From the IMG/VR virus record IMGVR_UViG_3300028558_000791, positions 310,001 through 374,000 of that record: a DNA stretch of 64,000 bases; one strand, 5' to 3'. Position 1 is the first letter of the stretch. Each line of letters begins with the position of its first letter. Position numbers and translations under genes: made by a program. Positions 1 through 63,999 of the stretch are shown here, in pieces. Under the pieces are notes generated by a model. The model was not told the origin of the DNA, searched no databases, and saw nothing but the letters and a program-made list of their open reading frames with translations.

Positions 1-2
1 TT

Positions 3-980
3 GCCATTCCATTTGTTTATGATGCTAGTTACTTGAAAACAAGCAGTACAGCAAATGCTGAAAGACCTTTGTTAGAGAAAATTATTAGAGACAGGTTGGC
101 AACACCCAAAGTATCTGATTCTGGTATTTCTGTGGCTGATACGGTTACCTACATACAAGGCAACAAGAACTTACAGGGAATAACCATAGGTGGAACTACT
201 CTTAGCAGTATTTTCAGCGGCAATGTGTATAAGCTATCCCAGCAACAAGCTTTTGCAGAATATCTATCTACTATCCGTTCATTAATGTTTAAACTAGTTG
301 ATTCTATGAGAATCATACATGCTCGACAAGGAAGCTATTACTGGCTACCAATTCCCGCAGTGCGCGGTCCTGAGGGCGGCTGTAGTATACGAGACGTACC
401 ACTCAGCAAGAATATTGACCCGGCTCTATTTACTATCAACGATTTTGACATCATTGAAAAGCAGGCTGGCGTTATTCTATCCAATCTAAACAGCTCATCC
501 GTTCAGCCATCTGTTACTCCAGACGCTGGAAGTTTTGCCTTTTCTAACTACAAGCTGACCTTTGATTCTAGTACCTCAGACTCCCAGGGTAACCTAAGCA
601 CTAGGTCACAAGATACCCTAACCAAAATTAGAACCAAGTCTTTAAAAGAGGCTTCTGAGGCTCTACAGATAATTGAAATGATTATGGGAGAGTTCAGCGG
701 TTTGGGTCTAGCTGATATTATTGCTATTATGGGCGCTCTCTATGTTATGCCGCTCAATGATCCTGATAGCAAAGGCACCGGCAACTTACTGGGATTTTTG
801 GATGATGATGCTGTTGTAAGAGCGGAAGAGATACTTGAACTCCCTGATAAGAGCCTACAGAACGTAAGGTCTGGAATCACTCCAGCGATGACTACTTTGT
901 GCAATACTGTCAATGGCTTTTACCAAATTATGGACCAGATTTTCCAAGACTACTTGAACAATGCTGCTCTCAACCTTTAA
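3..980 (+). CDS. Hypothetical protein, 5'-truncated (probable virion/tail-associated)
   Basis: Frame is open from the window edge (AIPFVYDASYLKTSS...); lies directly upstream of the baseplate genes; no recognisable motif. Confidence 0.6.
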   Translation, partial: AIPFVYDASYLKTSSTANAERPLLEKIIRDRLATPKVSDSGISVADTVTYIQGNKNLQGITIGGTTLSSIFSGNVYKLSQQQAFAEYLSTIRSLMFKLVDSMRIIHARQGSYYWLPIPAVRGPEGGCSIRDVPLSKNIDPALFTINDFDIIEKQAGVILSNLNSSSVQPSVTPDAGSFAFSNYKLTFDSSTSDSQGNLSTRSQDTLTKIRTKSLKEASEALQIIEMIMGEFSGLGLADIIAIMGALYVMPLNDPDSKGTGNLLGFLDDDAVVRAEEILELPDKSLQNVRSGITPAMTTLCNTVNGFYQIMDQIFQDYLNNAALNL

Positions 981-12712: not shown

Positions 12713-12720
12713 GAGAAGTA

Positions 12721-15700: not shown

Positions 15701-16746
15701 AGGATCAAATTAGATTTTCGGTTTCTGTGCAGTCTTTCTCACCAAATACAGCCGGTTTGAGTCCCGATGGATATACGGGAGCCATTGTAGATGGTAAGAT
15801 GGGTGTAAGCGTAGACTTTGAAACCGGCTTGCTCACATTGAACTTCAGTAATTTGTATCAGGACCCAACCCTCTTGACTCTAAGTACCAAGGTACAAGTC
15901 AATGTGTTCTTGAAGAAGGGCGGGTTTAACAACATGCCAATCTTCGTAGACTCTACTAAGGTCCAGAACATGCTAAGTTTGATTAGTGTCTTCAGCGGTG
16001 CCAATGATGGCGGCCCATCTGCTCTAGTAGATTTAGGTAATGATGTAACTGGAATCCTACCAATCTTGAATGGTGGTACCGGTCTCAATGCAGTAGGAGC
16101 TTTCGGAACCGTGCTCACAAGCACCGGAAGCGGACTAAGCTATCAATTCATTAATACTTTGCTCAACGTCATTCCATTCTCTAGTGGTATCCCATCTGCT
16201 GATAAGGTTCCAAAGCTTGATGGTTATGGATTCCTAGACCCAAGCTTTATGTACAAACAACCAATGTATATTGTTGGTGTGGCTGGAAACTACTCTAATG
16301 ATGGATATATTCCATCAGCCATTGGCGCCCTTACATTTAGACTAGATAGCTTCATTCTAGAAGGTCTAGATAGTATTAAGCTAGAGTGTATTCTAGAAAC
16401 TACTAATGTGGCTAGCACAGCAGGTCTACAGCTATTTAATGTAGATAACCACACTTATGTTCCTCTTAATGGATCTAGTACGGCTTTGATAACTACCAAT
16501 GTACAAGCAACGTACTTAGTATCTCAGGACCTAAAGGGATTGTTATACACGGGAGCTACGAACTTTGTATATGAAATCCATCTATTCTCGAATCCTGGTG
16601 GTTCATTGGATACGGGTATCTGCAAGATGGCAAGATTGGTTATGACATACAACAATTTGACTTTGAATGGAGTCTCTGCAATTGCACCTCCAGTATCTCA
16701 TAGCTACAACTTCGTACCGTTCCTACCAAGCCCAACTCCATCATAA
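12721..16746 (+). CDS. Large virion structural protein with dockerin/EF-hand-like repeats (1341 aa)
   Basis: N-terminal WYDAQQVDETDLSSEQ; GDVDGNGIIDEKDL and ADINGDFAVTTAD repeats; GILPILNGGTG fibre-like motif; last gene of the structural operon. Confidence 0.6.
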   Translation: MTKRAPVSVQKPIWYDAQQVDETDLSSEQTANDTIDAAIINNHIGDGVLPENLVANVLFDSSLTTGFLDGLAIQTQVQPSDNNFGNQLTITLTGSKASGHRRVKVGIIGLDFQSNLQYETFYFKSNEVQVSRRHFTKILVLLFNDFIGDDELSFNLGGNIVIAEALPMTLSRDIVMISQEQQPNLFFRDFFLDSSISKLSIQTMLQDALPLYNIDSLNILGAPLDNLPILSGDVTTQIGQKFQATTNSVQKISLLLSVRNQVAGKEDDLVWSGDIVVSIYPLQTSIDCPTDFLPNLPIDFSPSNIPVAQISYNYNSLTAAGIVLDSVPQPVDFVFSNSPVAGGNQMVPGQYYALTIKRSGSANQCDILVATGQDLITNSRITTFTGTLWVDIPDQDLWFIVWTDAAKVSDGQAYDQGHGVTIPKTTTDPTTLATVDNVFGSKQFVGNDVFRAVLAAVTQVSDPVPDQRTGNPVDSRQEYVPQVTLMNSIDITNLEKSSEPLILGAISDKNIKFFDASQQIINSTLYSATMVKDEIVIRIVDDPTDTVRFDLSVSGLATSLLNGDLVGAIIRPDAAAPFTSYRLAGARLCSMILGDVDGNGIIDEKDLALLNTFVGYNMNVGLPAHTNIVTDGYTTTFQNGYQSLTQPFANLFGISFQLINPNDGSVVAAATDGVLVANPSDPTLAQFTSATIQFNTIVGLSSYKLVILSSGSNEADWGGWNITALDSSVDVITIQKILLTGDVFAQMLRADINGDFAVTTADGYLLGSYIDRLPTTAIPPATYPAPSTNPYTKIGTRFNVIRLRVEELVDRLDDYTADPNTRALTVHPQQDIFSGDGYFANHNFYTSPIQMAFTKQLVWDASLVITNAHPKLVPSVFTSETGVVHNACEIEGIQCNVYPVPQPFDPGKVDFFVPNNLIIGDGELQRPDGYFYKVDFEVGTVVLEIPDGLFGSERTIDIMNDFISDYTGNGATRLGFPSMRFADCSYVQRDALSKDQIRFSVSVQSFSPNTAGLSPDGYTGAIVDGKMGVSVDFETGLLTLNFSNLYQDPTLLTLSTKVQVNVFLKKGGFNNMPIFVDSTKVQNMLSLISVFSGANDGGPSALVDLGNDVTGILPILNGGTGLNAVGAFGTVLTSTGSGLSYQFINTLLNVIPFSSGIPSADKVPKLDGYGFLDPSFMYKQPMYIVGVAGNYSNDGYIPSAIGALTFRLDSFILEGLDSIKLECILETTNVASTAGLQLFNVDNHTYVPLNGSSTALITTNVQATYLVSQDLKGLLYTGATNFVYEIHLFSNPGGSLDTGICKMARLVMTYNNLTLNGVSAIAPPVSHSYNFVPFLPSPTPS

Positions 16747-43609: not shown

Positions 43610-46600
43610 TTAACCGCCAGTAAATCCAGGAACCTCAAACCATTCGGCTGTGGCCATTACACTTATTATATTGGTTGCATCGCCCCTAAAATTAAATCTG
43701 ATAATGTTATCAGACGCACTAATACTAAAGTCCCAAACGGTTCCATTTGGAACATCATGTATAACAAATTGATCATCAATAATTGCTGTGCCGTTAACAT
43801 TATGAACTAAAATTTGACGACTGAACATTGCAGCTTGTTCATTATTGATGCTATTGGCAATACATGTGACTCTCATAGCATAAGCTTGACCTGGCTCTAG
43901 GAATAACTCTCCACTAAATTCATCTCTAAGTGTTATTGGAGCTTCATTAAATGAAGTTCCTTTTACAAAGTATCTTGCAAATTGAGCATCTCCGGGACTA
44001 CCTAAATAGCCGCCTGCATGAGATAGTTGTCCGGTTCTTATTGCTTTACCACCATGTCCGCCAGGAACGGTTCCATAATCTGCGGTAACACTGTTTTGAT
44101 AGCCGCCGCCAATGGTTCCTTTACCGGCTGAAATGCTGTTATTAATTCCTCCAGCAATTACGCTATAGCCATCACCACCAGAGATGACGTTATTAGTGCC
44201 ACCACCAACTGTATCAAAGTGGTCTTGTGTTCTATTGCTAGAACCTCCAGCAATTGTTCCATATGGTTGAGTAACGGTGTTGTTAGAACCGCCACCAATG
44301 GAAGCGTCGTTTGCACCAGATAAAACTTGGTTAAACTGGCCGCCACTAATGACTGCATATGATGCGCTATTATTGTTGTTAGCGCCACCACTTATTACGG
44401 CTCCAGAGCTGTTGCTGACGTCATTACCAATACCTCCAGCAATCGTGGCATAATCTGCTGTAACAATAGCATGGCCATGACCTCCACTGATAGTGCCTCC
44501 TGTAGTGTCACCAATGGAATGTCCTTCTCCGCCAACAATAACATTCCATTTACGGCCAGGCGTGCCAGTACTATAAATAGTGTTATTGCCACCACCACCA
44601 ATAAATGAGAATGTTGGTGGTCCACCGAGACCACTAGTATCATAAATTAAGTTACTGAATCCACCAAGTATTACGTCATATTCGCCTTGTGATTTGTTAT
44701 TAAGACCACTTAGAATGACCGCATAGTTGTTGCCAGTGCCGGGTGATAGGTATGGGTTAGTTTGTTCAGCAAAATTTAACTGACCTGAAAATGCGGGACT
44801 GACATCTGATTGATTTAGTTTGGTAGATACTAAATTAGAACGACCAATAACATCATCAAATACTATATCTCCCTGAAACCATTTAGCTGAAAATGGGCCA
44901 GCCCAAGATTCGTTGAACTGATTTGAACTATTATCAATGCTTACAATTGAGTTTCCGCCAGGATTAGCTACCCAAGTATAATTATTGTAGGAATCGTAAG
45001 CCATTCCCATAAATGGAGCGCCACTTAATCCAGATGTTGGAATCTTAATGGTAGCTGTTATTGATGGAGAACTAGTTATAGCTGTAGATACTCTAAAGAC
45101 AGTATTGTTACTATCATTAATCCAGATATCACCATCGTTATTACCATCAGAGATGATGTCTCCAGCAAAACCACCAAGACTTAAAAGTCCATTTGCTCCG
45201 CTATTAAGATTTTGGAACTCAAACTCTTGAAGAAGTTGGCTTCCCAAAGAAGTGGTCCATAATCCCCAACCAAAAGAATTGTGATGTACTGGTACAACAC
45301 CGCCGAGTTGATAACCTGGTGTATAACCCGAACCATTACCATAGTTACCAAATATAGTGCTGAGGCCGTCATCAACAGAACAGAACTGGTAGATATAGCC
45401 GGCACTGCCGGTGACTAGATAACCACCTTCGCCACCAATGAAGCACATATCTTCCCAGTCGGCCGTGCCGTTTGGTATGATTTGGAAAAGATCCGGATCA
45501 ATTTCAGTAGGGTAATTTGCAATCATATCAGAGATACTAAATCTCTGAACAACATCAGGTTGCGGATCGCTGACTGGACCTCTAGCCTTACATACTACCC
45601 AAAGGTAGTCTGCATTTCCGGTAGTGGTGATAGCTGTTGTCTGTCCAGTTTCAGTTCCTTTGGAATTACCAACACCAACAACTGCGGCACTGTTCTTATT
45701 GATAACATATACTTTACCACTATTATTAGAGGTTACATATACATTTGTTGAGTCGCCAGTAATTTTCCAACCTTGGAACGATCCTGACAAGCCAACATTA
45801 TTAGATAATACTGGGGAACCAGATGTAACATTTAGTTTTTGAACAGTTGGGGTCGAGGCATTAGTAACCCATAAATCATATGTTGCTGAATCAAACCATA
45901 AACCTACTGGGGTGATAAATAATTGATCTGGGACCAATCTCAAATTATCATATACATTACCTGGTGGTGGTAAAGTTCCAGCATCAATATTCAGATTTAC
46001 TGTATCAAATGCGCCCGATGAAAAAGTTCCGCCGCTTGGAATATTAATTGTTCCAAATGCTCCGATTCCAGTTCCATTATTTTGAAATTGCAATTGATTG
46101 GTAGATGATGGAATAGATGTGTATACAATTTCTAATTGACCACCAAAGAATTTAACCCAAGCTTCTGTACCTAATCCGGTAGAGATAGCATCCATACCGC
46201 CAGCGTAGCCACCAGTACTTAAGGTCCAAATATAAGTGCCATCAAAAGCTGGCATACCAAAACCGTATGGAGAATGACTTACTGAAGCAATTACAGCCTC
46301 ACTACCAAGCGTTGTTGATATTCTATATGCTACTGAACCATTATTAGTTTGCCAAATAGTGGAATCATCACTTATAATACATCGTCCCACACTAGGGTTA
46401 GCTGTAGGTATGAATGCAATAGGCGCAGAAAGATTAGATGGATCAAATCTATGAATGCCTCCACTACTCTCATGGAAATTATTAACCCATAAGCTTCCAA
46501 AAGCAAACGTGCAACCATATGCTACACCAAGACCAGGACTATCTTCGGTATATGAATCAAGCACAGTCATACTTGATGGATCTATTTTGTAAATCTTTCC

Positions 46601-47623
46601 ACCATCATATCCGCCGCTTGTGACAAATAGGAAGCCACCACCAAAACACATATTACCATAATATGATCCAGAAGCATCGGGACCTAGTGTCTGAAGAGGT
46701 GGTACTGAATTAGGGTATGCTAGAAGTGCAGCAGATTTAGAATATTTCTCAACTCTAGAGTTATTAAGTGGCGTACTGGTACTTGGGCCAGTAGAAACAT
46801 AAATATTGTTTCCATCAACAGCAATATCAAGGAAAAATTCTCCAGTACTACCAGTAGAAATTCTACCAACTATATTATTAGTTGCTCTTTCGATAATGAA
46901 AATGTGACCATAAGGGAAACTGGCTGGTCCAACTTGGTTATATCCAAGAGATGTAACAAAAATGTGAGTGTCATCTGATGTTAGTAACCCACTATTATTG
47001 CTTAGTGGTAGCTCAACTATCTTTGTAATTTCAGGGGTAGCAGGGTTTATTCTAAGTACGCCATTGCTTCCGCCATTGGAGACCCACAAATCTGTTCCAT
47101 CAAATATGATTCCAGCAGGCCCCTGAAAAGACTCTTTAGCTTGGAGATATTTGCCCGCATCATTATTGAATTCACCTTGATGACCTTTTCTTACAGGAAT
47201 AGTATTGATACCAATTACTTCTTGTGTAACTGGATTTCCTTGTAAGTCACCAGCAAAATGTACGTTAGCTGGTTGAGTGCCTGGTGTCCAGGCAAGTCCG
47301 TCCCAGACATATACATCACCAGGAGCTGGAGGGACGGTAGAAATAGGGCGGCCGTGAATACCAATGACCTGGGGATGTTCTAATGTTCCGCCCAAATCAT
47401 TTTCAAGTTCAATTACTCTTAAATTGCCAACAATATTTTCAAGTGCATCAAAGCGAGCACGAACGGTGGCATAAAGACCACTTGGTTTTACTCCTAGTTC
47501 CTCTTCAATGGCGATTATCGCCACTCTTAATTGCTCAACAGATCCGCCAGTTACTGGCTGTCCGTCAAGAATTGGCTTGAGGGTGAAAACGGTGTCTATG
47601 GCTGCTGGGTATTTTGTTACCAT
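43610..47623 (-). CDS. Tail-fibre/receptor-binding-like protein with beta-propeller repeats and GG-N repeats (1337 aa)
   Basis: N-terminal TKYPAAID...AIEEELG coiled segment; repeated FDGTDLWV/FDGTYIW blades; C-terminal I(G/A/S)GG-x-x-N repeats. Confidence 0.65.
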   Translation of the reverse strand: MVTKYPAAIDTVFTLKPILDGQPVTGGSVEQLRVAIIAIEEELGVKPSGLYATVRARFDALENIVGNLRVIELENDLGGTLEHPQVIGIHGRPISTVPPAPGDVYVWDGLAWTPGTQPANVHFAGDLQGNPVTQEVIGINTIPVRKGHQGEFNNDAGKYLQAKESFQGPAGIIFDGTDLWVSNGGSNGVLRINPATPEITKIVELPLSNNSGLLTSDDTHIFVTSLGYNQVGPASFPYGHIFIIERATNNIVGRISTGSTGEFFLDIAVDGNNIYVSTGPSTSTPLNNSRVEKYSKSAALLAYPNSVPPLQTLGPDASGSYYGNMCFGGGFLFVTSGGYDGGKIYKIDPSSMTVLDSYTEDSPGLGVAYGCTFAFGSLWVNNFHESSGGIHRFDPSNLSAPIAFIPTANPSVGRCIISDDSTIWQTNNGSVAYRISTTLGSEAVIASVSHSPYGFGMPAFDGTYIWTLSTGGYAGGMDAISTGLGTEAWVKFFGGQLEIVYTSIPSSTNQLQFQNNGTGIGAFGTINIPSGGTFSSGAFDTVNLNIDAGTLPPPGNVYDNLRLVPDQLFITPVGLWFDSATYDLWVTNASTPTVQKLNVTSGSPVLSNNVGLSGSFQGWKITGDSTNVYVTSNNSGKVYVINKNSAAVVGVGNSKGTETGQTTAITTTGNADYLWVVCKARGPVSDPQPDVVQRFSISDMIANYPTEIDPDLFQIIPNGTADWEDMCFIGGEGGYLVTGSAGYIYQFCSVDDGLSTIFGNYGNGSGYTPGYQLGGVVPVHHNSFGWGLWTTSLGSQLLQEFEFQNLNSGANGLLSLGGFAGDIISDGNNDGDIWINDSNNTVFRVSTAITSSPSITATIKIPTSGLSGAPFMGMAYDSYNNYTWVANPGGNSIVSIDNSSNQFNESWAGPFSAKWFQGDIVFDDVIGRSNLVSTKLNQSDVSPAFSGQLNFAEQTNPYLSPGTGNNYAVILSGLNNKSQGEYDVILGGFSNLIYDTSGLGGPPTFSFIGGGGNNTIYSTGTPGRKWNVIVGGEGHSIGDTTGGTISGGHGHAIVTADYATIAGGIGNDVSNSSGAVISGGANNNNSASYAVISGGQFNQVLSGANDASIGGGSNNTVTQPYGTIAGGSSNRTQDHFDTVGGGTNNVISGGDGYSVIAGGINNSISAGKGTIGGGYQNSVTADYGTVPGGHGGKAIRTGQLSHAGGYLGSPGDAQFARYFVKGTSFNEAPITLRDEFSGELFLEPGQAYAMRVTCIANSINNEQAAMFSRQILVHNVNGTAIIDDQFVIHDVPNGTVWDFSISASDNIIRFNFRGDATNIISVMATAEWFEVPGFTGG

Positions 47624-54893: not shown

Positions 54894-55670
54894 ATGGCAG
54901 ATTTGGATGACAGCTATTTCGAGACTCTTATTAATCAAACAAAGGGTCTGTTTGGCAATAAAAACCAGCAGAGTGCGCCGGCCTCCCCAACCCCAGGCGG
55001 GCAGGGAAAGCAATTTGTAGTGTCTCCTGGAGGCTTCACGGCCCCAATCCATGGTGCCTGGCACAACTTGGGCGGATTCGCCCCCAGCATGAAGCGCTAC
55101 GATGATGATCCAAAGGCTGCAAAAGGCCGTGGACATTTTGGTGTTGACATGAGCGCTGCTGCCGGAACCCCAGTCTATGCCCTCACTTCAGGCACAGTCA
55201 ATACTGTAGGTACTGACCCAATGGGTGGTAACATCGTAGGCGTTCAACATGCCAATGGTCTATGGTCCTATTACGCCCATCTTTCTACTGCCAGTGTGCA
55301 GAAGGGGGATAAGGTAGATTCCAATACTGTAATTGGTACCGTAGGTAATACGGGCAATGCCGGTAACCCCAATGACCCCCTAAAGACGCAAGAGGGTGGA
55401 AGAACCTGGCCTCACTGTCATTTTGGTATTAAAGAGAATGGTAGCTGGGTTGACCCTGCCAAGTACATTACTATTCCCGCTTATGATCCTAGTTTTGCTA
55501 AGAATCCATCCAAGTATCAAAAATTTTGGGTATCTGATCAGGCCAAGCAAGATGCAGAAGCATTCAACATGAAAGACCACCTCTCTAAACGTAGAGTGGC
55601 CTTCTCTAAAGATGTTGATACATTAATGAAGGTTGCGTTTGAGTACGCTAAAGCCATTAAGAAAACTTAA
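54894..55670 (+). CDS. M23-family metallopeptidase (peptidoglycan hydrolase)
   Basis: HFGVD, GTPVYA, YAHL, VGNTG, PHCHF. Confidence 0.88.
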   Translation: MADLDDSYFETLINQTKGLFGNKNQQSAPASPTPGGQGKQFVVSPGGFTAPIHGAWHNLGGFAPSMKRYDDDPKAAKGRGHFGVDMSAAAGTPVYALTSGTVNTVGTDPMGGNIVGVQHANGLWSYYAHLSTASVQKGDKVDSNTVIGTVGNTGNAGNPNDPLKTQEGGRTWPHCHFGIKENGSWVDPAKYITIPAYDPSFAKNPSKYQKFWVSDQAKQDAEAFNMKDHLSKRRVAFSKDVDTLMKVAFEYAKAIKKT

Positions 55671-55987
55671 CGATCAATCCAGGTAAGGACAACCTCTATA
55701 TTAGAGAGCGCGTGCCCACTGGGCGGAATCAATAGTGGTGCGCCCATCGAGAACCATACTTCATACCTATTGGTGCTAGTATTAAATCCTTGCAACTTGA
55801 AATAGGTATTGAATCCGTATGTTACTCTAGTGGTCGGATTAAACGCTACAAATTGAATCGATGGATTATAGGCAGTGGTAACAAAATTGCTTTGGTAATC
55901 ATGTATTCCTTGACTTCCTGAATATTGTCCAGTCCAAGTTTTAAATAACACATTACCGAAAACACCTAAATCTGTAGTGGTTGACAT
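55667..55987 (-). CDS. Small virion-associated protein, paralog of 63068..63562
   Basis: YFKLQGFN...YEVW...PPSGHALSNI...WI. Confidence 0.65.
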   Translation of the reverse strand: MSTTTDLGVFGNVLFKTWTGQYSGSQGIHDYQSNFVTTAYNPSIQFVAFNPTTRVTYGFNTYFKLQGFNTSTNRYEVWFSMGAPLLIPPSGHALSNIEVVLTWIDR

Positions 55988-55996
55988 AGTTTATCC

Positions 55997-58753
55997 TTAT
56001 GGGTTCAATCCGCCGGCACCATTCCATCTCATATAGATTCCATTTTGGAGATGTAGAAATTGTGCGGTTCCATTAACAGTACCACCACCAGTATATGGAT
56101 TTAGTCCATTAGTATTGTTTAATGTAAAGTGAGTATTATCAACTACTGTAATAACAAAAGTTCCATTAGCAACAGTATTGCCTGTTACTCCAGTAATGAC
56201 CACCGTCTGTCCAGTTACTAATGTATTAGTTGCAGATGTTGTAATTTGGATTGGTGATGTAGCGGTCGCTCCAGTTACCGTTAGGGATGTCGTGTTATCG
56301 GTGCTTAAAGTAAAGGTTCCAAAGTTAGCTCTTCCTTGTCTAATATTTGGCGCAGTTCCCATAAATCTCTGATTGATAGTATTTACAGTTAAACCACCAA
56401 TAGCAATTGGTAAGCTACCTACGTTATCTGTTGCTGTTCCGCCCCAAATTTCCCAAGGCAATAACTCTGTAGTTCCTGTAAATGGACTATCTCCGGCATT
56501 CGTGGCGTAAGCTGGACTTGCACCAGAAACTCCATCCGCATTTGCCCAGCCCGAAATTAAACAGGTTTCAGGTGCAGAATCTCTGAACGTGTAGCCAAAA
56601 TTATTGGAGTTACCCACTCTCATTTGAATTCCACTATAATCAACAGTATTAACTCCACCATAGACAAATGGTCTATTGGTAGTTGGAGCTAATGGCGATG
56701 GCTCATTGCTAGGTATTCCCATTAGAAGGAGTCCATTGGCGCCTGCACCCTGTGTTCTAGCATACATGAAAACTGATTGACCAAGATCATCACCCATTAC
56801 AGTCATACGATAAGCAATAGCTCCAGTTGTTGAAGCTCCAACAACCGATGCCGCATAAGGTGAAACGGGATTGTTTCCTAAATATTGCGATATGCTGCTA
56901 GTTATTCCGCCTATAGGCCAGTCACCATTTAAGACTCCGCCGAAACCAACACTTACTGATGTTGGAGGCATATTTGGAATGTTAAATGGTTCAACGGCCA
57001 TTCTAGATTGCCATGCAGTTGAGTGCGGGCTTTGTAGAATAATCTTACTATTAAATGAATATCCATCACCACCAGTATATCCAATACGACTTATAGATCC
57101 GGAAGTGGTAGAGGTACCATTACCAATAGACCCATTGAGTGTAAACGTATTACTTCCATTAGTTGTAATTGTCCAAGTGCCATTAGCATTTGTATTTCCA
57201 GTCACACCAGCTATAGTAACTCTTTGACCAGTTAAAAATTGATTGATCGTATTCAAATTAGGTGTAACTTGAATAGGTGCCGTGTTTGTTGTTGATAGCA
57301 TTCCTAAACCAGTAATAAAAGTATTATTTGGGTAGGACGCGTAAAATGAAACTTGAGTTTCAACTTCATACAACCACCAATCCATAGTCTCGTTAGGTGG
57401 AGTATCAGTAGAGCGATAATCAATTGTATAGCCGTTGAAATTATTAACTGTGTTACCAGTAGTCATTGTGCCAGTTCCACCAGTACATCCTGTAAATTGC
57501 GTGCCGCCTGAAATTCCGGTATATGCTACTGTCTGTACCCCTGTAGTTGTAAAGACAAAAATGTTTCCGCTAGTTGGGAATCCGGCCGTGGAAGCGACAT
57601 TTATAGTAGACTGTGGAAGTGATGCATTGTTAGAGCCGACAGCAATAGTGGTGCTGTTGCCAGTATTAGCGGCAGAGATTTTGAAAGCGCCAGAGTTTTT
57701 GGTTGTATAACTGGAACTTTTTAGTACTAGTATTCTACCTGCATCTCCTGTAGTTGGTGCAGTTCCAGATACTACAACTCTAGCAGATTGTGGAATGCTA
57801 ACAGCATAGACTGAGTTAGCGCCAGTCACATTTATCTGTGCTCCCGTTCCTCCAGCAACAGTACCAGATGCGACTAGCATACCTGTAGGTGTTAGAGTTC
57901 CAGAAAAAGCGGTGTAGGCAGCGCCATCAGCCTTAGAACCAACCAGCGTTAATTGTGTCGGGCTAGTAACAACAGTTGGCCATAGTCCATTAAGATTGGC
58001 TGTACCGGCAATTCCGGATGTTAAAACATACTGGCCACTCGTTACTCCGTGTGGTACTTGAGTTGTAATGGTTGCATACTGATTAAGCGTAGTAGTAGCG
58101 GCCGATATTTTAGTTGGTCCACAGAAGATAGTGCTTGCAGCAGAGGTGACAGCATTACCTGTAGCCATAGAACCGGTGCCACCTAGACATCCAGTAAAGG
58201 TCGTTGCACCAATTCCAGTATATGTTACTAGTTGAGTGCCTGCGGAGGTAACGACATAGATAGATCCACTAGTAGGAAATCCTGCTGTTGTGGCTACGTT
58301 GATAGTTGCTTGCGGAAGAGATGCTCCGTTAGATCCTGAAGTTATTGTTGTGGCTTGACCAGATGACATACTACCAGTTCCACCAGTGCAATTTAAGAAT
58401 GCATTAGCTGTAGTACCGGAATATTTGACAGCCTGAATCCCACCAGAAGTATTGACATAAATAGTTCCAGAATTAGGGAAACTAGTTGTTGATATTACAT
58501 TGATGATAGATTGCGGAAGTGATTGTCCATTTGACCCAGCAGCTACGGAGGTTCCATTGCTGGCCGTAAATGTTTGCACATTTGAGTTGTTGATATCCCA
58601 TCCAGTATTAGAAACAACAGAATGACCTAATATTTTGTGCATGAAGACTGGCAACAAATATTGCTGTGTAACCCAGAAGTAATTGACACCACCACCAGGA
58701 GCAAAATATCCAGTGGTTGCCATAGGATAGTCTCTTAGAATATGAACAGCCAT
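55997..58753 (-). CDS. Fibre-like virion protein, paralog family (918 aa)
   Basis: Shares GRILVL, IDYRS, WWLYE, IILQSPH, MGDD, GRANF, HLQNG motifs with its neighbours; contains repeated inserted modules. Confidence 0.7.
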   Translation of the reverse strand: MAVHILRDYPMATTGYFAPGGGVNYFWVTQQYLLPVFMHKILGHSVVSNTGWDINNSNVQTFTASNGTSVAAGSNGQSLPQSIINVISTTSFPNSGTIYVNTSGGIQAVKYSGTTANAFLNCTGGTGSMSSGQATTITSGSNGASLPQATINVATTAGFPTSGSIYVVTSAGTQLVTYTGIGATTFTGCLGGTGSMATGNAVTSAASTIFCGPTKISAATTTLNQYATITTQVPHGVTSGQYVLTSGIAGTANLNGLWPTVVTSPTQLTLVGSKADGAAYTAFSGTLTPTGMLVASGTVAGGTGAQINVTGANSVYAVSIPQSARVVVSGTAPTTGDAGRILVLKSSSYTTKNSGAFKISAANTGNSTTIAVGSNNASLPQSTINVASTAGFPTSGNIFVFTTTGVQTVAYTGISGGTQFTGCTGGTGTMTTGNTVNNFNGYTIDYRSTDTPPNETMDWWLYEVETQVSFYASYPNNTFITGLGMLSTTNTAPIQVTPNLNTINQFLTGQRVTIAGVTGNTNANGTWTITTNGSNTFTLNGSIGNGTSTTSGSISRIGYTGGDGYSFNSKIILQSPHSTAWQSRMAVEPFNIPNMPPTSVSVGFGGVLNGDWPIGGITSSISQYLGNNPVSPYAASVVGASTTGAIAYRMTVMGDDLGQSVFMYARTQGAGANGLLLMGIPSNEPSPLAPTTNRPFVYGGVNTVDYSGIQMRVGNSNNFGYTFRDSAPETCLISGWANADGVSGASPAYATNAGDSPFTGTTELLPWEIWGGTATDNVGSLPIAIGGLTVNTINQRFMGTAPNIRQGRANFGTFTLSTDNTTSLTVTGATATSPIQITTSATNTLVTGQTVVITGVTGNTVANGTFVITVVDNTHFTLNNTNGLNPYTGGGTVNGTAQFLHLQNGIYMRWNGAGGLNP

Positions 58754-61700
58754 TACGTTCCTCCTGCCAGTACGTTATACGGTAGGATAGAACCATCCCA
58801 AGGAAGTAATATTCCATTAACTAAATGGATAAACTCACCACTATTTCCAACTAAATAAAATTGTGGTAATGTACCGCCCGTAAACTGCATTGGTCTCATT
58901 CTAGCTCTTGCAAATGAATACTGTCCAGCAGTTGAAGATACTGACATTAAAGCATCACTATATATAACTTGTCCAGTTTTATTTTGATAGGATAGGAATG
59001 TTGATAGGTTAAATCCTACAGTATATGCTGGCAAGATATTTCCTGGAGTACCTATAGTGCCTCCCGTATCACCGCCAAGATTTCTTGTTATCAATTGATG
59101 GGATCTAGTAACTCCATCAAATCCGACCATACCAAAAGATGTAGAAACGGAATCTGTAGTGTTACTTGCAGTTAACCCATTGCCACCAACTAGTATGGCT
59201 AGTAAATTAGGATCTTGTGCTTGCGTATACAATCTAGTTGGAGTGCAAGCCATAAAGTATAATGCTTTAGCGTTCGCTGCACCGTTGGAGTTAGCAGATT
59301 GAACATGGCCAAAGAAAAAGTCAGTATCGGCGAAAATTGTAACGAACCCACTTACGTTTATGTTTGCGCCGTTCAAAGTCACACCGTTAGCACTTGTTCT
59401 TTCTGTCATAGCTGAATTAGAGCCTGTTCCAGAAAAAGTAGCTCCAGACCAGCTACCATTAGGAGATCCTGCCATTCCAAAAGTTCCGAAAGCATTAGCC
59501 GCTCCTCTTAAGAAGAATTGAAATTGGCTTGGGGCTTGTCCAAAATTGATGTTAGCAGCTCCATTCATGGTTCCTACAAAATAGTTACCATTAGCTACTG
59601 CCAACTGAGATGCTGCTACAATATCAATTACTCTGTAGCTAAGTGAAGCTCTAGATGTTAGATTGTTTTTAAGAGTTGATATGTCTGTTGTTCCGCCGCT
59701 AAATGGAACCAATTGCAATTGTGTATTTGATGGCACAGCTACAATCTTGTAAATAGAGTCATCTGTACTTGCCGGATTAACAGATACATTTCCATTAGTG
59801 AACATAGTGCCGGTGCCTCCAGTACATCCAGTAAATATCTGTCCCGTAACAGCATTACCAGTAGTCATAGCTCCAGTACCACCCGTACATCCAGTAAAGC
59901 TAGTTGCAGTTACTCCAGTATATGTTACTACTTGTGCGGCGTTAGCATTCGTAATTACATTGATAGTTCCACTTGTTGGAAATCCGGTTGTGGATCCTAC
60001 ATTGATTGTTGCTTGAGGAAGTGATTGTCCATTAGATCCGACTGCAATAGTAGTATTAACTATTCCAGTATAAGCAACTGTTTGAGTACCAGCATTTGTT
60101 ACTACAAATATGGTTCCACTGTTTGCGAACCCAAGAGTGGATCCTACATTTATATTTGACTGTGGTAGTGTTTGTCCAACAGAAGCCTGACTAACTCCTG
60201 TATTAGCTCCAGCCAACCAGACAACTACATGCTTACCTATCATAGTAGCTGGACTAAATGGAGTTGAGGCAGAAGCTGTTAAGGTGCTACCGATAGAAGA
60301 GGTGACTCCATCGTTTCCTACAGCCAAAACACTTGCTCCCTCAAAAAATCCGGCCGGACCGCTGGTTGGAGAAATTGGCATTCCTCCCGGTACAAATACT
60401 TGACCACCACTAGTATAAGTGGCATTGCCAACAGCTCCATTCAAACTGAATTGAGTAGAGCTTACAACGGTAACGTTCCAACCACCATTGGCATTGGTAT
60501 TTCCACCTACGTTATATACGCCGACTAATTGGTTATTAGATAGATTATGGGGAGTGGAGGTAGTTATTGTAATTGGGTTGGCATTAGAGGCTGCAATTAC
60601 GTTAAGCATTTGGTTAGTGCCATTGACGCAATACGCCCAAAACTCATAGCACAACTTCATGAAGATAGGGATATCCTTACCATTCGTTCCTGTTGTGTAT
60701 TGTAAACCTCTAAGTAATTTTAAAGCCATTTTATCCTTATGCTACCACTGGCGGACCGCCCCACAATAACCACAAACCCCTTCTCATATGTTGTCCAACA
60801 AGATCAGTGGTTGTGGTAAATTCAGAGAAATTAGCTCTTCCTTCCCTTATATGCGCAATAGTTCCCAGGAACCTTCCTTCTAGTCTGGGGAAGCCATAAT
60901 TGATGGCTGCCGAGCCGTTCCAAGTGTTTACAATTCCAGCCATTACATCTACTGGATACAGTTCTGTTCCGCCAAGCCAAGGGGATTCGCCAGCGCTACC
61001 ATCAAAAATTGGACTGCCTTGTTGTCCATTTCCAAAAATATAAGCCAACAATGTAATATTCAGTGTAACTGGTAATGGAACTTGGCCAATAGCTGACTGA
61101 ATAGTTATGCCTTGTGTATTACCGCCTCCAATATTTCCCGGATACCAACTCATATCGTTTAAGCTATTCCCGCTACCTGAACTTAATCCCGAACCAATAA
61201 CAAATAATCTAGCTTCATTGTTTGGTGGTAATGGAACTATTTCCTGAGCTGGTAGTCCAAATGTTAGGAAGTATGATCTTGGAGTACTGGCATTTCCTGG
61301 TCTACGACCAAATATTGAAACACCATAACCATCATCATCTCCTGCTAAAGTAATTCTATAAGGCATAGAATTAGTTCCAGCAGGGATATTTGTATTATCA
61401 CCAAATCCTAAAGTTCCACCTTGCAAATTATTGCTATTTGAATTGTAATATAGTGCAGTGTGAAGATGTGGCCCTCCAACCGCAAAGTCTCCAGAAGCAT
61501 TGCCACCAAATCCAGGAGCAAAACTTATTAACGGGCACTCAGAGCTAACGCCCCCAGTTCCAACTGAAGAATCATCAACTGTTTCATGACAAATTCTAAC
61601 TTGCCAGGCCAAAGCATGCGGGCTTTGAAGAATAAGTCTTGGTGTCGTAGAAGTTCCATTACCCCTATATTGTAAAGTAGTATTTCCATTAGAAGCACCT

Positions 61701-62630
61701 TGAATTGGCGAAGAGCCATCTTTTTCATATAGATACCAATTCATACTATCAGATGGTTCTGCTGGCGGAAGATTAGGTGAGAAGTAAATTGTACCACCAG
61801 TTGACATGGATCCAGTTCCTCCCGTACATCCTGTGAATGTAGTCCCGGTCGATCCTGTGTATGAAACTTTTTGTACACCAGCAGATGTTGTTACATAGAT
61901 GGTTCCACTGTTAGGATTGAATCCTGCTACCACTGCATTACCAGTACTCATAAGGCCAAACCCACCTAAACATCCTGTGAATGTGGTCGCTGTAGTTCCA
62001 GTATAGCTAACTAACTGTTTACCATTATCAGTTGAAACCCAAATGTTTCCGGCAGTAGGAAATCCCGTAGTAGAAGCTACTGTGATAGTACCGGCAGTCG
62101 CTGTTGGCAATCTGGTCGCATTGGAGGCGGATGCAATTGTTGTTGTAGCAGTAGTTGTTGAAGCGACGTTAATAGTTGCTTGCGGCAAAGATTGACCGTT
62201 AGATCCAGAAGCAATCGTAGTGGTAGTTGCAGAAACTATTGTAGAGAATCCAATGACACCTGTACCACCCGAACATCCTGTGAAAGTGGTAGCCGTTATT
62301 CCGGTATAGCTAACTGTTTGCCTACCGGTACTAGTATAAACAAATAGAGTTCCGCTACTTGGAAATGGTGTAGTGGATGGGACCGTTAAGGTAGTTTGAG
62401 GTAGAGTAGTTGCATTGTTAGCTACACCATTTCCAGTTCTCATAGCTCCAGTGCCACCCGTACAACCGGTGAAAGTAGTAGCCGTTTTTGCAGTATAGGT
62501 TACAGTTTGCACGCCGTTATCAGTATACACTAAAATAGTTCCACTAGCGGGAAATACTGTTGTTGAGCTTACGTTAATAGTGCTTGTAGGAAGAGAAATG
62601 GCATTAGAGCTAGATATGATTGTTGTATCT
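57440..62630 (-). repeat. Nine copies of a ~65-aa module (TTIAxGSNGxSLPQxTINVxSTxGFPxSGTIxVxTxxGxQxVxYTGxTxTxFTGCTGGTGxMxTG)
   Basis: 3 copies in the 918-aa, 2 in the 658-aa and 4 in the 773-aa protein, read from the translations; boundaries approximate. Confidence 0.85.
58753..60729 (-). CDS. Fibre-like virion protein, paralog family (658 aa)
   Basis: LLR N-terminus; C-terminal HLVNGILLPWDG; nested repeat modules. Confidence 0.7.
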   Translation of the reverse strand: MALKLLRGLQYTTGTNGKDIPIFMKLCYEFWAYCVNGTNQMLNVIAASNANPITITTSTPHNLSNNQLVGVYNVGGNTNANGGWNVTVVSSTQFSLNGAVGNATYTSGGQVFVPGGMPISPTSGPAGFFEGASVLAVGNDGVTSSIGSTLTASASTPFSPATMIGKHVVVWLAGANTGVSQASVGQTLPQSNINVGSTLGFANSGTIFVVTNAGTQTVAYTGIVNTTIAVGSNGQSLPQATINVGSTTGFPTSGTINVITNANAAQVVTYTGVTATSFTGCTGGTGAMTTGNAVTGQIFTGCTGGTGTMFTNGNVSVNPASTDDSIYKIVAVPSNTQLQLVPFSGGTTDISTLKNNLTSRASLSYRVIDIVAASQLAVANGNYFVGTMNGAANINFGQAPSQFQFFLRGAANAFGTFGMAGSPNGSWSGATFSGTGSNSAMTERTSANGVTLNGANINVSGFVTIFADTDFFFGHVQSANSNGAANAKALYFMACTPTRLYTQAQDPNLLAILVGGNGLTASNTTDSVSTSFGMVGFDGVTRSHQLITRNLGGDTGGTIGTPGNILPAYTVGFNLSTFLSYQNKTGQVIYSDALMSVSSTAGQYSFARARMRPMQFTGGTLPQFYLVGNSGEFIHLVNGILLPWDGSILPYNVLAGGT

Positions 62631-63058
62631 GGAGTAATTGATGTCCCACTTCTATAATCAATGACATAAGAATTAGTGCCAGTATCAAATCCGGTAATTA
62701 GAAAACAACCTGAATTAGATTGTGGATTAGCCGTACTTCTTAGGACTAGTATTCTACCCTTATCGGTAGCAGAAACTGTTCTAGTCCCTGATGGAATAGA
62801 AACGTTCAACTCGGTATTCAAACCTAGATTGATTCCGGCTCGTGAGCCGCCAGCAAAAGTTGGGGCACCAGTAGGAGTAGAGTCGGCGGTAGAGATTAGT
62901 AACGTTCCAACAGAATTTATGTTGTAGTTCGTATCACCAACATAGGTATACAACAAAACTCTTCTTAAAAAGATCGTTGATAGATACGAGCCAATGAATG
63001 TAGAGGTTGTAGTATTGAAATTCTGTGTTACATAATCTCTGAGTAAATGCCTTACCAT
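60737..63058 (-). CDS. Fibre-like virion protein, paralog family (773 aa)
   Basis: HLLRDY N-terminus; four repeat modules; GRANF...HMRRGLWLLWGGP. Confidence 0.7.
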   Translation of the reverse strand: MVRHLLRDYVTQNFNTTTSTFIGSYLSTIFLRRVLLYTYVGDTNYNINSVGTLLISTADSTPTGAPTFAGGSRAGINLGLNTELNVSIPSGTRTVSATDKGRILVLRSTANPQSNSGCFLITGFDTGTNSYVIDYRSGTSITPDTTIISSSNAISLPTSTINVSSTTVFPASGTILVYTDNGVQTVTYTAKTATTFTGCTGGTGAMRTGNGVANNATTLPQTTLTVPSTTPFPSSGTLFVYTSTGRQTVSYTGITATTFTGCSGGTGVIGFSTIVSATTTTIASGSNGQSLPQATINVASTTTATTTIASASNATRLPTATAGTITVASTTGFPTAGNIWVSTDNGKQLVSYTGTTATTFTGCLGGFGLMSTGNAVVAGFNPNSGTIYVTTSAGVQKVSYTGSTGTTFTGCTGGTGSMSTGGTIYFSPNLPPAEPSDSMNWYLYEKDGSSPIQGASNGNTTLQYRGNGTSTTPRLILQSPHALAWQVRICHETVDDSSVGTGGVSSECPLISFAPGFGGNASGDFAVGGPHLHTALYYNSNSNNLQGGTLGFGDNTNIPAGTNSMPYRITLAGDDDGYGVSIFGRRPGNASTPRSYFLTFGLPAQEIVPLPPNNEARLFVIGSGLSSGSGNSLNDMSWYPGNIGGGNTQGITIQSAIGQVPLPVTLNITLLAYIFGNGQQGSPIFDGSAGESPWLGGTELYPVDVMAGIVNTWNGSAAINYGFPRLEGRFLGTIAHIREGRANFSEFTTTTDLVGQHMRRGLWLLWGGPPVVA

Positions 63059-63067
63059 ATTTTACCT

Positions 63068-63562
63068 TTACTGGATCCATCTTGCTACTATTTTTATGTT
63101 GGAAAGAGTATTTCCAGAAGGAGGAGCGAAGAAAACATTCAAATCTACATTGGGTGGGTTTCTAGTTGGATCAAACACTTCAGGACGCGGCACGATTTCT
63201 TCTGAAATTATCCATGTTTCGTAGGAGCTAGTGTTCTGATTAAACCCAGATAGTTTGTAATATATCTGTTGGTCTTTAGGATGAGGATAAACTGTGTTAG
63301 TGTCTAGTTGAACTGTTTGAAAATTCAATTCTGGAATGGCACTATAGTTATCTATAAACCCATTATATCCTTGATCTCTGAATGAGCTTGATAGGTTTTG
63401 GACTGTATTGCCTCCGTAATTGCCATTATTACCTTCATACAACACATTGAATTCGCCTTGTGAACCTTTTGGTAGTACAGATCCGCCAAAATTTTGATCG
63501 AATCCTTGATAGGGAAGAGTGCTTCCGGCAGTGTTAATTCCTAAATCAGCGGAGTTACTCAT
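63068..63562 (-). CDS. Small virion-associated protein, paralog of 55667..55987
   Basis: YYKLSGFN...YETW...PPSGNTLSNI...WI; likely ATG at 63562 (MSNSADLG, cf. MSTTTDLG). Confidence 0.65.
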   Translation of the reverse strand: MSNSADLGINTAGSTLPYQGFDQNFGGSVLPKGSQGEFNVLYEGNNGNYGGNTVQNLSSSFRDQGYNGFIDNYSAIPELNFQTVQLDTNTVYPHPKDQQIYYKLSGFNQNTSSYETWIISEEIVPRPEVFDPTRNPPNVDLNVFFAPPSGNTLSNIKIVARWIQ

Positions 63563-63999
63563 GGTACGACCTGTGGACCATTCCAAGTTACATAAACACC
63601 ATTTCTCATATGCTGCCAGGAATGATTGGCATCGGTGGTTAGTGAATACTCACCAAAGTTAGATCGGCCCGCTCTTAGATGAGGAACAGTTCCAATAATT
63701 CTTGGTTCAAGAGGAAATAAGGTTTGTGAGACGCCGCTATAACCACTAAAAGTAGTTGCTGTTCCATTAACAATATCTACCGAGAATAGTTCTGTGGCAT
63801 TTAACCATACACCATCGGTTGCGCTACCATCGAATCCGGGGCTATTAAATTGACCTACCCCTGTAGTATAAGTCCAAAGAGACGGCACACTACTGCATGG
63901 TAGTCCGCCCTGTGATTGACTAACGCCTTGACCTAGATTGGAATCGGGTGTCGATCCGTTGCTGGCAAATACGTTTCCTGGAGACCAACCAACATTATT
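63559..63999 (-). CDS. Fibre-like paralog, 5'-truncated by the window edge
   Basis: Frame is open to the window end; LEPRIIGTVPHLRAGRSNF...HMRNGVYVTWNGP matches the C-termini of the 773 and 918 aa proteins. Confidence 0.7.
   Translation of the reverse strand, partial: NNVGWSPGNVFASNGSTPDSNLGQGVSQSQGGLPCSSVPSLWTYTTGVGQFNSPGFDGSATDGVWLNATELFSVDIVNGTATTFSGYSGVSQTLFPLEPRIIGTVPHLRAGRSNFGEYSLTTDANHSWQHMRNGVYVTWNGPQVVP

Follow-up and report, generated by a model that had tools for sequence, protein, structure and literature searches.

The best described analogue of the insertion of a small domain into copies of the same fold is the Si3 insertion of cyanobacterial RNA polymerase, in which copies of one small beta domain (SBHM) are not arranged in simple tandem, four of the eight SBHMs are built from distant parts of the chain, and the whole forms an elongated (~150 Å) body inserted in a loop of the host protein (PMC10895346). 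Among phage structural proteins, small beta-barrels are placed as inserted or decorating domains in loops of virion proteins, for example the I-domain of the P22 coat protein, residues 490–567 of lambda gpJ, and the insertion domains of tail tubes and capsids; these are single insertions into a different host fold and are not inserted into copies of themselves. In phage JBD30, two adjacent genes with similar folds, gp47 and gp48, build the lateral tail fibres as heterodimers (PMC11445458). In addition, the 'evolved' distal tail proteins of lactococcal and lactobacillus siphophages are host-recognition proteins enlarged by whole carbohydrate-binding modules inserted in loops; the inserted domains differ in fold from their host, and no recursion is known.

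Here, a stretch of 64,000 nucleotides (hereafter the window; positions 310,001 to 374,000 of IMG/VR record IMGVR_UViG_3300028558_000791), belonging to a 480-kb soil phage, was analysed. Three adjacent minus-strand genes encoding proteins of 918, 658 and 773 aa (P0001, P0002 and P0003) carry nine copies of a module of about 68 residues, which is a beta-barrel in predicted structures and has repeatedly been spliced whole into loops of other copies of itself, a rare natural case of recursive domain insertion. A sequence-only reading of the window had previously described nine copies of a ~65-aa module in these genes, one copy interrupting another in the 658-aa protein and again, at a different point, in the 773-aa protein, with one copy before the IDYRS motif in the 918-aa protein and the copies of the 773-aa protein after it. 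Every one of these statements held when the locus was examined with a profile built from the copies (Table 1), and the nesting turned out to be more extensive than had been described.

Table 1. Genes and module copies in the window (all on the minus strand), with the residues, profile positions and i-E of the profile matches
Feature	Window position	Residues	Profile match	Remarks
P0001	55997..58753 (-)	918 aa		Family-A scaffold; three intact modules and three FCCH-like barrels
Module copy 1, P0001	58346..58546 (-)	70-136	70-136; i-E 5e-31 to 5e-32 (range for copies 1-3)	Intact; orthologues P0156 and P0170 carry a further module inserted at profile position ~35 of this copy
Module copy 2, P0001	58145..58345 (-)	137-203	137-203; see copy 1	Intact; orthologues P0153 and P0161 carry a further module inserted at position ~23 of this copy
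Module copy 3, P0001	57443..57646 (-)	370-437	370-437; see copy 1	Inserted in the scaffold hairpin just before the IDYRS motif
P0002	58753..60729 (-)	658 aa		Family-B scaffold; one nested pair and one FCCH-like barrel (residues 51-116)
N piece of split host module, P0002	60049..60195 (-)	179-227	179-227; profile 1-49; 2e-20
Complete inner module, P0002	59845..60048 (-)	228-295	228-295; 8e-31	Inserted between YTGIV and QIFTGC; absent from the 565-592-aa orthologues
C piece of split host module, P0002	59782..59844 (-)	296-316	294-316; profile 45-67; 4e-5
P0003	60737..63058 (-)	773 aa		Family-A scaffold with a predicted JBD30-gp47-like fold; two tandem modules plus one nested pair, all after the IDYRS motif
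Module copy 6, P0003	62420..62620 (-)	147-213	147-213	Intact
Module copy 7, P0003	62231..62419 (-)	214-276	212-276	Intact; the most diverged copy
N piece of split host module, P0003	62141..62215 (-)	282-306	282-306; profile 1-25; 3e-7
Complete inner module, P0003	61928..62137 (-)	308-377	308-377; 6e-30	Inserted in the strand-1/strand-2 turn of the host module
C piece of split host module, P0003	61784..61924 (-)	379-425	379-425; profile 22-67; 1.5e-18

In both split copies the N and C pieces are complementary: when joined, each aligns over all 67 match positions of the profile with nothing missing or duplicated, and the inserts themselves are full-length profile matches. That is to say, on the sequence level these are complete domains lying inside discontinuous host domains. 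Outside the window, 12 more copies were found. A 1260-aa gene just beyond it (P0004) carries the module nested five deep, its order of N pieces (N), full copies (F) and C pieces (C) being N26 N25 N33 N36 F C39 C37 C21 F C23, preceded by a separate N25 F C21 nest. The breakpoints of these pieces match in last-in-first-out order. Moreover, 156 of the 351 module-bearing proteins collected contain at least one N...C pair. Last-in-first-out pairing is the best or joint best of all pairings in 14 of 15 balanced multi-level proteins, with a summed breakpoint mismatch of 11.9 against 43.5 for first-in-first-out and 34.3 for random pairing, although most of these proteins are orthologues and therefore not independent. 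The breakpoints of 168 N/C pairs cluster at profile positions 22–24, 33–38 and 45–48, that is, at three turns of the module (~23, ~35 and ~47), and small indels in intact modules fall in the same loops.

Comparison of related phages of ~470–510 kb showed clean gains or losses of one module, including inside a module. In the P0002 group, the gene exists with 0 modules (~500 aa), with one intact module (565–592 aa) or with the nested pair (643–673 aa); in the P0001 group, there is no nest, a nest in copy 1 or a nest in copy 2; and in the P0004 group, two clean one-module indels occur in all four combinations. The direction of each indel, insertion or precise loss, is inferred from identity levels and not from a rooted tree.

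The AlphaFold2 models were confident. The model of P0003 had a pLDDT of 84.5 and a pTM of 0.85, with the split host at pLDDT 88–95, and the model of the five-level nest had a pLDDT of 89.3 and a pTM of 0.66; every piece keeps the strand pattern of the intact module. At the level of the fold, the predicted module is a small barrel of the EF-Tu-domain-2 / F1-ATPase-N-terminal / P22-I-domain kind, superposing at Z 5–7.2 and rmsd 2.0–2.8 Å over 63–71 residues on many V1/F1-ATPase, EF-Tu, eRF3, Hbs1 and SelB chains; since these Z values are middling, this is a fold assignment and not evidence of homology. Its structural neighbours among virion proteins are the P22 I-domain (2m5s: Z 6.3, rmsd 2.5 Å, 74 residues aligned), the lambda tail tip (Z 5.2–7.0), the Mystique tail tube (9n71: Z 7.5–8.3) and the VP1 capsid protein (9in6: Z 7.1), with none of which a sequence relationship was found. 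In the predicted five-level nest, structural alignment (VIA-align) placed contiguous 80–100-residue barrels from the PDB on model ranges 25..318, 49..269 and 1..445, with only 64–72 aligned residues at rmsd 2.0–2.8 Å. These ranges are the predicted N+C pieces of levels 2, 3 and 1, so that in the models the split barrels re-form from pieces up to about 365 residues apart.

Fragment complementation of the P0002 host (residues 176–227 plus 294–325) gave weak support, with an ipSAE of 0.40 against 0.01 for the best of 3 controls. The mark was reached by 58 of 80 solved complexes and by 2 of 110 mismatched pairs, but at 0.60 or under it was reached by only 7 of those 80 and by both mismatches that passed; the runs agree in at least 92% of contacts and the pLDDT of the partner is at least 62, and as alignments of our own were used, the counts hold only roughly.

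The predicted scaffold of P0003 resembles JBD30 gp47. Chain 8rk3_K, which was identified as gp47 by its length, gave Z 16.4 and rmsd 4.1 Å with 253 of 317 residues aligned over model residues 4..767, and 8rk3_G (gp48) was matched by Foldseek at probability 0.98. There is no sequence similarity between them, and the JBD30 proteins are ~310 aa and carry no barrel modules. In the present locus two gene families, A and B, alternate, but no homology between them could be demonstrated, and the structural assignment concerns the family-A scaffold only, so that a heterodimeric fibre would be an analogy with JBD30.

Taken together, we hold with fairly high confidence that the module is an autonomous beta-barrel of ~68 residues decorating the predicted fibre-forming proteins of a clade of uncultivated soil phages. 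In this view, the chain enters and leaves the barrel at the same place, so that a whole barrel, or a whole nest of barrels, can be spliced in frame into a turn of another barrel or of the scaffold without breaking the host fold. A single intact module in the ancestor of the 658-aa gene would have received a second module at position ~47, the 773-aa gene carries its nest at position ~23, and the two pieces of each host module would re-form one barrel at the base of the insert; a nest would therefore be a stalk of barrels in which the chain runs out and comes back, whereas tandem copies give beads on a string. The analysis itself shows the nesting, the complementary breakpoints, the orthologue indels, the fold and the re-formed barrels, the latter two in predicted models; the adjacency of the termini, the DNA mechanism, the stalk geometry and a role as surface spacers or adhesion domains of tail fibres are inferred, and the adjacency and the geometry rest on alignment ranges, secondary structure and confidence scores.

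The interpretation offered by the sequence-only reading, namely a loop-insertable domain with adjacent termini that spreads by recombination and produces branched, multivalent fibres, is partly supported. True nesting and a loop-insertable domain are supported, and the adjacency of the termini has indirect structural support. Spread by recombination is plausible but the evidence is indirect: besides the four combinations of two indels, nest units with the same breakpoints occur in different proteins, the host modules of the P0003 nest and the first P0004 nest being 80% identical, and in one case the same junction motif occurs in P0004 level 2 and in the P0153 copy-2 nest. It appears that nest units, once formed, are copied between modules of different proteins by recombination within the flanking module halves. 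However, the nests in the window's own genes are old (DNA copies 62–85% identical), and no recent event, junction microhomology or donor could be identified. An inner copy is not the closest relative of its host (58% for the P0002 inner copy against its host, for example), which argues against local self-duplication but does not name a donor. Branched, multivalent fibres remain a conjecture of that reading.

Both alternatives that the sequence-only reading had named as able to overturn it were examined, and neither fits. Ordinary tandem repeats seen out of phase or decayed by deletions, with the apparent nesting a by-product of circular permutation, are very unlikely: tandem pairs do exist (P0001 copies 1–2 and P0003 copies 6–7) and many family members have only F F arrangements, but an array cut out of phase gives C F..F N, whereas the order observed is N..N F C..C with several N pieces in a row, each with a complementary C piece, and the orthologues go from one intact module to a nested pair in a single clean indel with no F F intermediate. 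Mis-joining of repeats by the metagenome assembler can be all but excluded. The region is repetitive at the protein level, and the comparison with contigs gave four joints (run X1); these, however, are 24–62-letter secondary matches of a separately assembled 23-kb contig to other module copies, and that contig spans the whole stretch with 0 differences. The divergence of the DNA copies leaves no long exact repeats to mis-join, contigs from a second rhizosphere sample and study bridge three of the four nest junctions with no differing letters, and the same nests occur in dozens of independent assemblies at 50–85% protein identity.

It is also unlikely that the pieces extend one large continuous beta structure, such as a sheet, solenoid or propeller-like array. 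Although all the structures here are predictions, and the N-terminal 40 positions of the profile give weak summed matches to the NHL-propeller 'Pizza' blades, the Pizza and PknD matches have E-values of only 3.6–21 per stretch and cover only profile positions 2–42, and the models show barrels. Likewise unlikely is an actively mobile element, with homing-like or enzyme-driven copy-and-paste, or a target of programmed diversification. Recurrent insertion at the same three sites and the polymorphism among orthologues would fit it, but the module DNA is just the 200–215 nt coding for the barrel, the copies are old and diverged, and no nuclease, reverse transcriptase or recombinase is encoded within or beside the modules, a result that does not extend to diversity-generating retroelements elsewhere in the 480-kb genome. 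The site preference is explained by structure, since only inserts in turns are tolerated, and by inferred gene conversion between homologous module halves.

Compared with Si3, whose fold and family are unrelated, whose setting is cellular and whose architecture is fixed and ancient in one protein, the nests described here are polymorphic between related phages, occur in many proteins and at three defined turns, and reach five strictly nested levels. Domain insertion is known, and same-fold nesting is known in that one cellular protein; here a small domain is nested in itself up to five deep, with gains or losses visible between related genomes, which makes the process itself open to study. It is possible, although tentative, that recursive insertion is a general and ongoing way for this module family to grow, in which a barrel with paired termini and three permissive turns would act as a self-similar building block, and nests would be copied between proteins by gene conversion using the host-module halves as homology arms. 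Phages could in that way lengthen or branch their receptor-binding fibres in one-module steps and shuffle them between paralogues, a mode of fibre evolution distinct from tandem repeat expansion and from swapping of C-terminal tips. For annotation, a large unannotated virion domain family is marked and the fibre genes of ~0.5-Mb soil phages are given a first structural assignment (predicted JBD30-gp47-like), while repeat finders and domain callers will mis-describe such genes as fragments or degenerate repeats. For protein engineering, a natural barrel that tolerates whole-domain inserts at three turns, and can itself be inserted, is a ready-made scaffold for display or for rigid out-and-back stalks.

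The module has no Pfam family: Pfam gave nothing for it at E up to 0.1 in 13 module-bearing proteins, and the only PHROG hit is phrog_22827, of unknown function. The E1_FCCH-like barrel (PF16190) of phage fibre proteins, also a ~65-aa barrel found at variable positions, co-occurs in the same proteins, but PF16190 matches only other segments of P0001 and P0002 and no module residues, a profile–profile comparison (hhalign) gave a probability of 0.3%, and the FCCH domain of UBA1 is only a weak structural neighbour (Z 4.8–4.9). On the other hand, the module profile matches 3128 cluster representatives, and besides three turns of itself, the module sits in at least three loops of the family-A scaffold, in the family-B scaffold, and inside GMC-oxidoreductase-like and pectate-lyase-like proteins.

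The DNA under study belongs to a virus record of 480,838 bp (G000), and the same DNA occurs in rhizosphere metagenomes from two samples and two studies. The module-bearing proteins lie in three adjacent minus-strand genes, P0001, P0002 and P0003, and a fourth gene, P0004, is located just beyond the window. The coordinates of these genes and of the neighbouring features are collected in the table. The same gene order is found in a related 492-kb contig (L005), where a 1260-aa gene, a ~580-aa gene, a small gene, the 773-, 658- and 918-aa genes and another small gene are followed by an M23 peptidase on the other strand. The two small proteins that close each group of fibre genes are paralogues (BLASTP 4e-11), and the locus looks like a duplicated cassette of family B, family A (the two scaffold families of the fibre proteins) and a small gene.

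Positions of the module-bearing genes and neighbouring features (the window is bases 310001-374000 of G000; L001 is the stretch of the record in which P0004 lies)
Feature	Position	Strand	Description
P0001	window 55997-58753	-	918 aa
P0002	window 58753-60729	-	658 aa
P0003	window 60737-63058	-	773 aa
P0004	L001:1295-5077 (G000 375295-379077)	-	1260 aa, family B; eight module copies, including the five-level nest
Module copy, one example	window 57443-57646		carries the FTGCTGGTG loop, as every copy does
FCCH-like barrel	window 57878-58075		P0001 residues 227-292
FCCH-like barrel	window 57083-57280		P0001 residues 492-557
FCCH-like barrel	window 56060-56257		P0001 residues 833-898
FCCH-like barrel	window 60382-60579		P0002 residues 51-116
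Small protein	window 63068-63586	-	172 aa, closes a group of fibre genes
Small protein	window 55667-55987	-	106 aa, closes a group of fibre genes
M23 peptidase	window 54894-55670	+	Pfam 2.4e-25, divergent from the fibre cassette
Four very large ORFs	window 1467-16746 and 43610-47623	+ and -, respectively	1364, 2384, 1341 and 1337 aa
Laminin_G_3 (PF13385) proteins	L005:1260-3919		three proteins just upstream of the fibre cassette in the 492-kb relative
Matching genes in this genome	L001:5168-8327		only unknown-function or weak structural-protein PHROG matches

Motif scans and a profile built from the copies confirmed nine copies of a ~68-aa module in the three genes, of which seven are continuous. 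In P0002, the order is an N piece (profile 1-49), a full copy and a C piece (profile 45-67), while in P0003 it is two full copies, an N piece (1-25), a full copy and a C piece (22-67). When each N piece is joined to its C piece, a module is obtained that aligns over every profile position. The sequence-only reading had described nine copies, with a complete copy (~59842-60057) interrupting another between YTGIV and QIFTGCTGGTG in the 658-aa protein, a copy (~61928-62150) interrupting another between VASTT and AGFNPNSG in the 773-aa protein, and copies lying before the IDYRS motif in the 918-aa protein (one copy) but after it in the 773-aa paralog. The junctions, the coordinates and the statement on IDYRS are all correct. 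The observation is real, and it is more extensive than was reported. In every copy, the FTGCTGGTG loop holds a nearly invariant cysteine and three nearly invariant glycines, and it could be a ligand- or metal-binding loop, or simply part of the core packing.

The profile also found 12 further copies elsewhere in the genome. P0004 reads N25 F C21, and then N26 N25 N33 N36 F C39 C37 C21 F C23 (N and C, pieces with their breakpoints; F, a full copy), which is five strictly nested levels with one extra full copy in tandem inside level 1, and the breakpoints of the N pieces are met in reverse order by the C pieces. Among 15 fully balanced multi-level proteins, last-in-first-out pairing is the best or joint best of all permutations in 14, and the summed mismatch is 11.9, against 43.5 for first-in-first-out. 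Most of these proteins are orthologues and therefore not independent, although independent examples exist, such as the proteins P0075 (N36 N49 F C45 F C31) and P0208 (N24 N49 F C46 C27).

Word-index searches with P0003, P0004 and P0002 returned hundreds of relatives, many of which come from contigs of 470-511 kb. Scaffold-only relatives exist for both families, with 455-490 aa for family A and 425-514 aa for family B. The orthologues of P0002 form a ladder of no module (~500 aa), one intact module (565-592 aa) and a nested pair (643-673 aa), and P0353 is an example of the natural one-module orthologue. In the alignment, the single intact module corresponds to the two pieces of the split copy in P0002, and the inner copy is one clean indel between YTG.. 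and ..FTGC. The orthologues of P0001 show three states: no nest, a module inserted at position ~35 of copy 1, or a module inserted at position ~23 of copy 2. Those of P0004 range from 987 to 1341 aa in steps of about one module and differ by two clean one-module indels, all four combinations of which exist. Over 168 N/C pairs, the breakpoints cluster at profile positions 22-24, 33-38 and 45-48, and intact modules carry their small indels in the same loops.

Two conditions that would have overturned the nesting, out-of-phase tandem repeats and mis-assembly, were examined. A tandem array read out of phase would give C F F N, never N N F C C, and circular permutation is therefore excluded. The nested order is also not an assembly artefact. 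The DNA copies are 62-85% identical, so that no long exact repeats exist, and an independently built 23-kb contig spans the stretch with no difference. Moreover, contigs of 260-713 bp from a second sample and study, with no differing letters from the window, bridge three of the four nest junctions, and the joints listed for run X1 are short secondary matches between module copies on that same contig. As for alternative identities, the module profile against PDB sequences returned only NHL 'Pizza' propellers, which arose through summed weak repeats and were rejected. A second small barrel, matching Pfam E1_FCCH (PF16190), is scattered at different positions in the same proteins and behaves like another insertable decoration, but it shows no profile similarity to the 68-aa module. 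Between the family-A and family-B scaffolds, BLASTP gave E 0.14 and hhalign gave E 0.015 over 48 C-terminal columns at a probability of 3%, and it is not claimed that they are paralogues.

AlphaFold2 with an alignment of 58 relatives gave P0003 a mean pLDDT of 84.5 and a pTM of 0.85, with the split host copy as the most confident module (pLDDT 88-95). Foldseek of the whole model against the PDB returned nothing at E up to 1e-3, and the scaffold match emerged only on re-alignment against PDB chains, while phmmer of the P0003 sequence against PDB sequences found nothing. In the re-alignment, the scaffold (model residues 4..767, skipping the modules) matched chain K of the JBD30 baseplate at Z 16.4, with 253 of 317 residues aligned, and the modules matched the N-terminal barrels of F1/V1-ATPases, EF-Tu domain 2 and barrels of phage tail and capsid proteins, at Z 5-7.5 and rmsd 2.3-3.5 Å. 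Chain K is gp47 by its length. In JBD30, gp47 and gp48 have similar folds and form the heterodimers that build the three lateral tail fibres, which bind the type IV pilus (PMC11445458).

The five-level nest (P0004 residues 386-830, 24 orthologues in the alignment) was modelled at pLDDT 89.3 and pTM 0.66. In an exhaustive alignment against 48,161 chains, contiguous barrels of 80-100 residues superposed, with 64-72 aligned residues at rmsd 2.0-2.8 Å, on model ranges 25..318 (many translation-factor barrels, lambda gpJ and the UBA1 FCCH domain), 49..269 (the crAss001 capsid protein) and 1..445 (eIF5B and the FCWL1 head-to-tail protein), and continuous copies were matched at 124..200 and 321..396. 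The three ranges are those of the N and C pieces of levels 2, 3 and 1, and a compact barrel can be matched that well only if the two pieces sit together in the predicted model; this comparison of alignment ranges is the strongest structural test made here. A fragment test of the P0002 host copy (residues 176-227 against 294-325, each with an alignment of module halves) gave only weak support, with an ipSAE of 0.40 against 0.01 for the best of three controls. The mark was reached by 58 of 80 solved complexes and 2 of 110 mismatches, but at 0.60 or under it was reached by only 7 of the 80 and by both mismatches that passed. The runs agree in at least 92% of contacts and the pLDDT of the partner is at least 62, while the counts hold only roughly because our own alignments were used.

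Pfam and PHROG scans gave no named family for the module, and it has no Pfam model. A profile search of 1.84 billion representatives found 3128 proteins at E up to 1e-3 and 1164 at E up to 1e-10, which range from 250 to 3300 aa. They include pectate-lyase-like proteins and a GMC-oxidoreductase-like protein (P0154, 1287 aa, a metagenomic relative), in which modules lie within and between its two Pfam halves, so the module also inserts into an enzyme fold. Nests at the same three turns occur in these other contexts too, as seen among the best 150 of the 3128 representatives. Look-alikes in the atlas are all from tailed phages. However, megablast of the locus and tblastn of P0003 and of a module pair found nothing in 50,697 GenBank phage records, with the low-complexity filter of BLAST on, by which weak kin could be masked, and no isolate exists.

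The interpretation in the sequence-only reading is thus partly supported: a loop-insertable domain with true nesting is right at its core, whereas its extensions, namely the recombination mechanism and the branched, multivalent fibres, remain unproven. What the analysis demonstrates is that whole modules occupy turns of other modules, that the host pieces are complementary, and that orthologues differ by single whole modules; the rest is inference. It is inferred that the two termini of the module are adjacent, which is necessary if an insert bridges a beta-turn and is consistent with long paired strands at the level junctions in the model. It is likewise inferred that new nests arise by rare in-frame insertion of ~200-215 nt, with selection keeping only those that fall in turns, and that existing nests spread by recombination through the flanking module halves. 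Three observations favour such spread. The host copies of the P0003 nest and of the first P0004 nest are 80% identical and share the same breakpoints, which is well above the 45-65% typical between copies, although the two scaffolds are not alignable. The junction motif of P0004 level 2 recurs in the copy-2 nest of P0153, a family-A protein, and inner copies are closer to modules of other proteins than to their own hosts. On the other hand, the DNA of the two similar nests is diverged, with no sign of recent conversion and with the inner copies much more diverged, and neither long exact repeats nor junction microhomology could be recovered from the DNA of the locus, which speaks against any recent event.

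The function is also inferred. Tandem copies would give beads on a string, whereas nests would give out-and-back stalks projecting from a gp47-like fibre subunit and exposing several barrels, and by analogy with other virion decoration barrels these would serve as spacers or weak adhesion domains. The nearest analogue is the Si3 insertion of cyanobacterial RNA polymerase, in which four of eight SBHM domains are built from distant parts of the chain and the whole forms a 150-Å rod (PMC10895346). The present case differs from it in the fold, the viral setting, the number of proteins involved and the polymorphism between related genomes. Literature searches for nested or recursive domain insertion in phage fibres found no description, within a collection lacking most subscription journals.

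IMG/VR labels the 480-kb record a 'provirus' at 100% completeness. Nothing that looks like host flanks was seen in the window, the GC content is even at 36-45%, and a tRNA scan of the window found none. None of the four very large ORFs contains the module, and the 1337-aa ORF, the only one of the four that was scanned, has no PHROG match. The M23 peptidase encoded next to the fibre cassette is probably a virion-associated or lysis peptidoglycan hydrolase.
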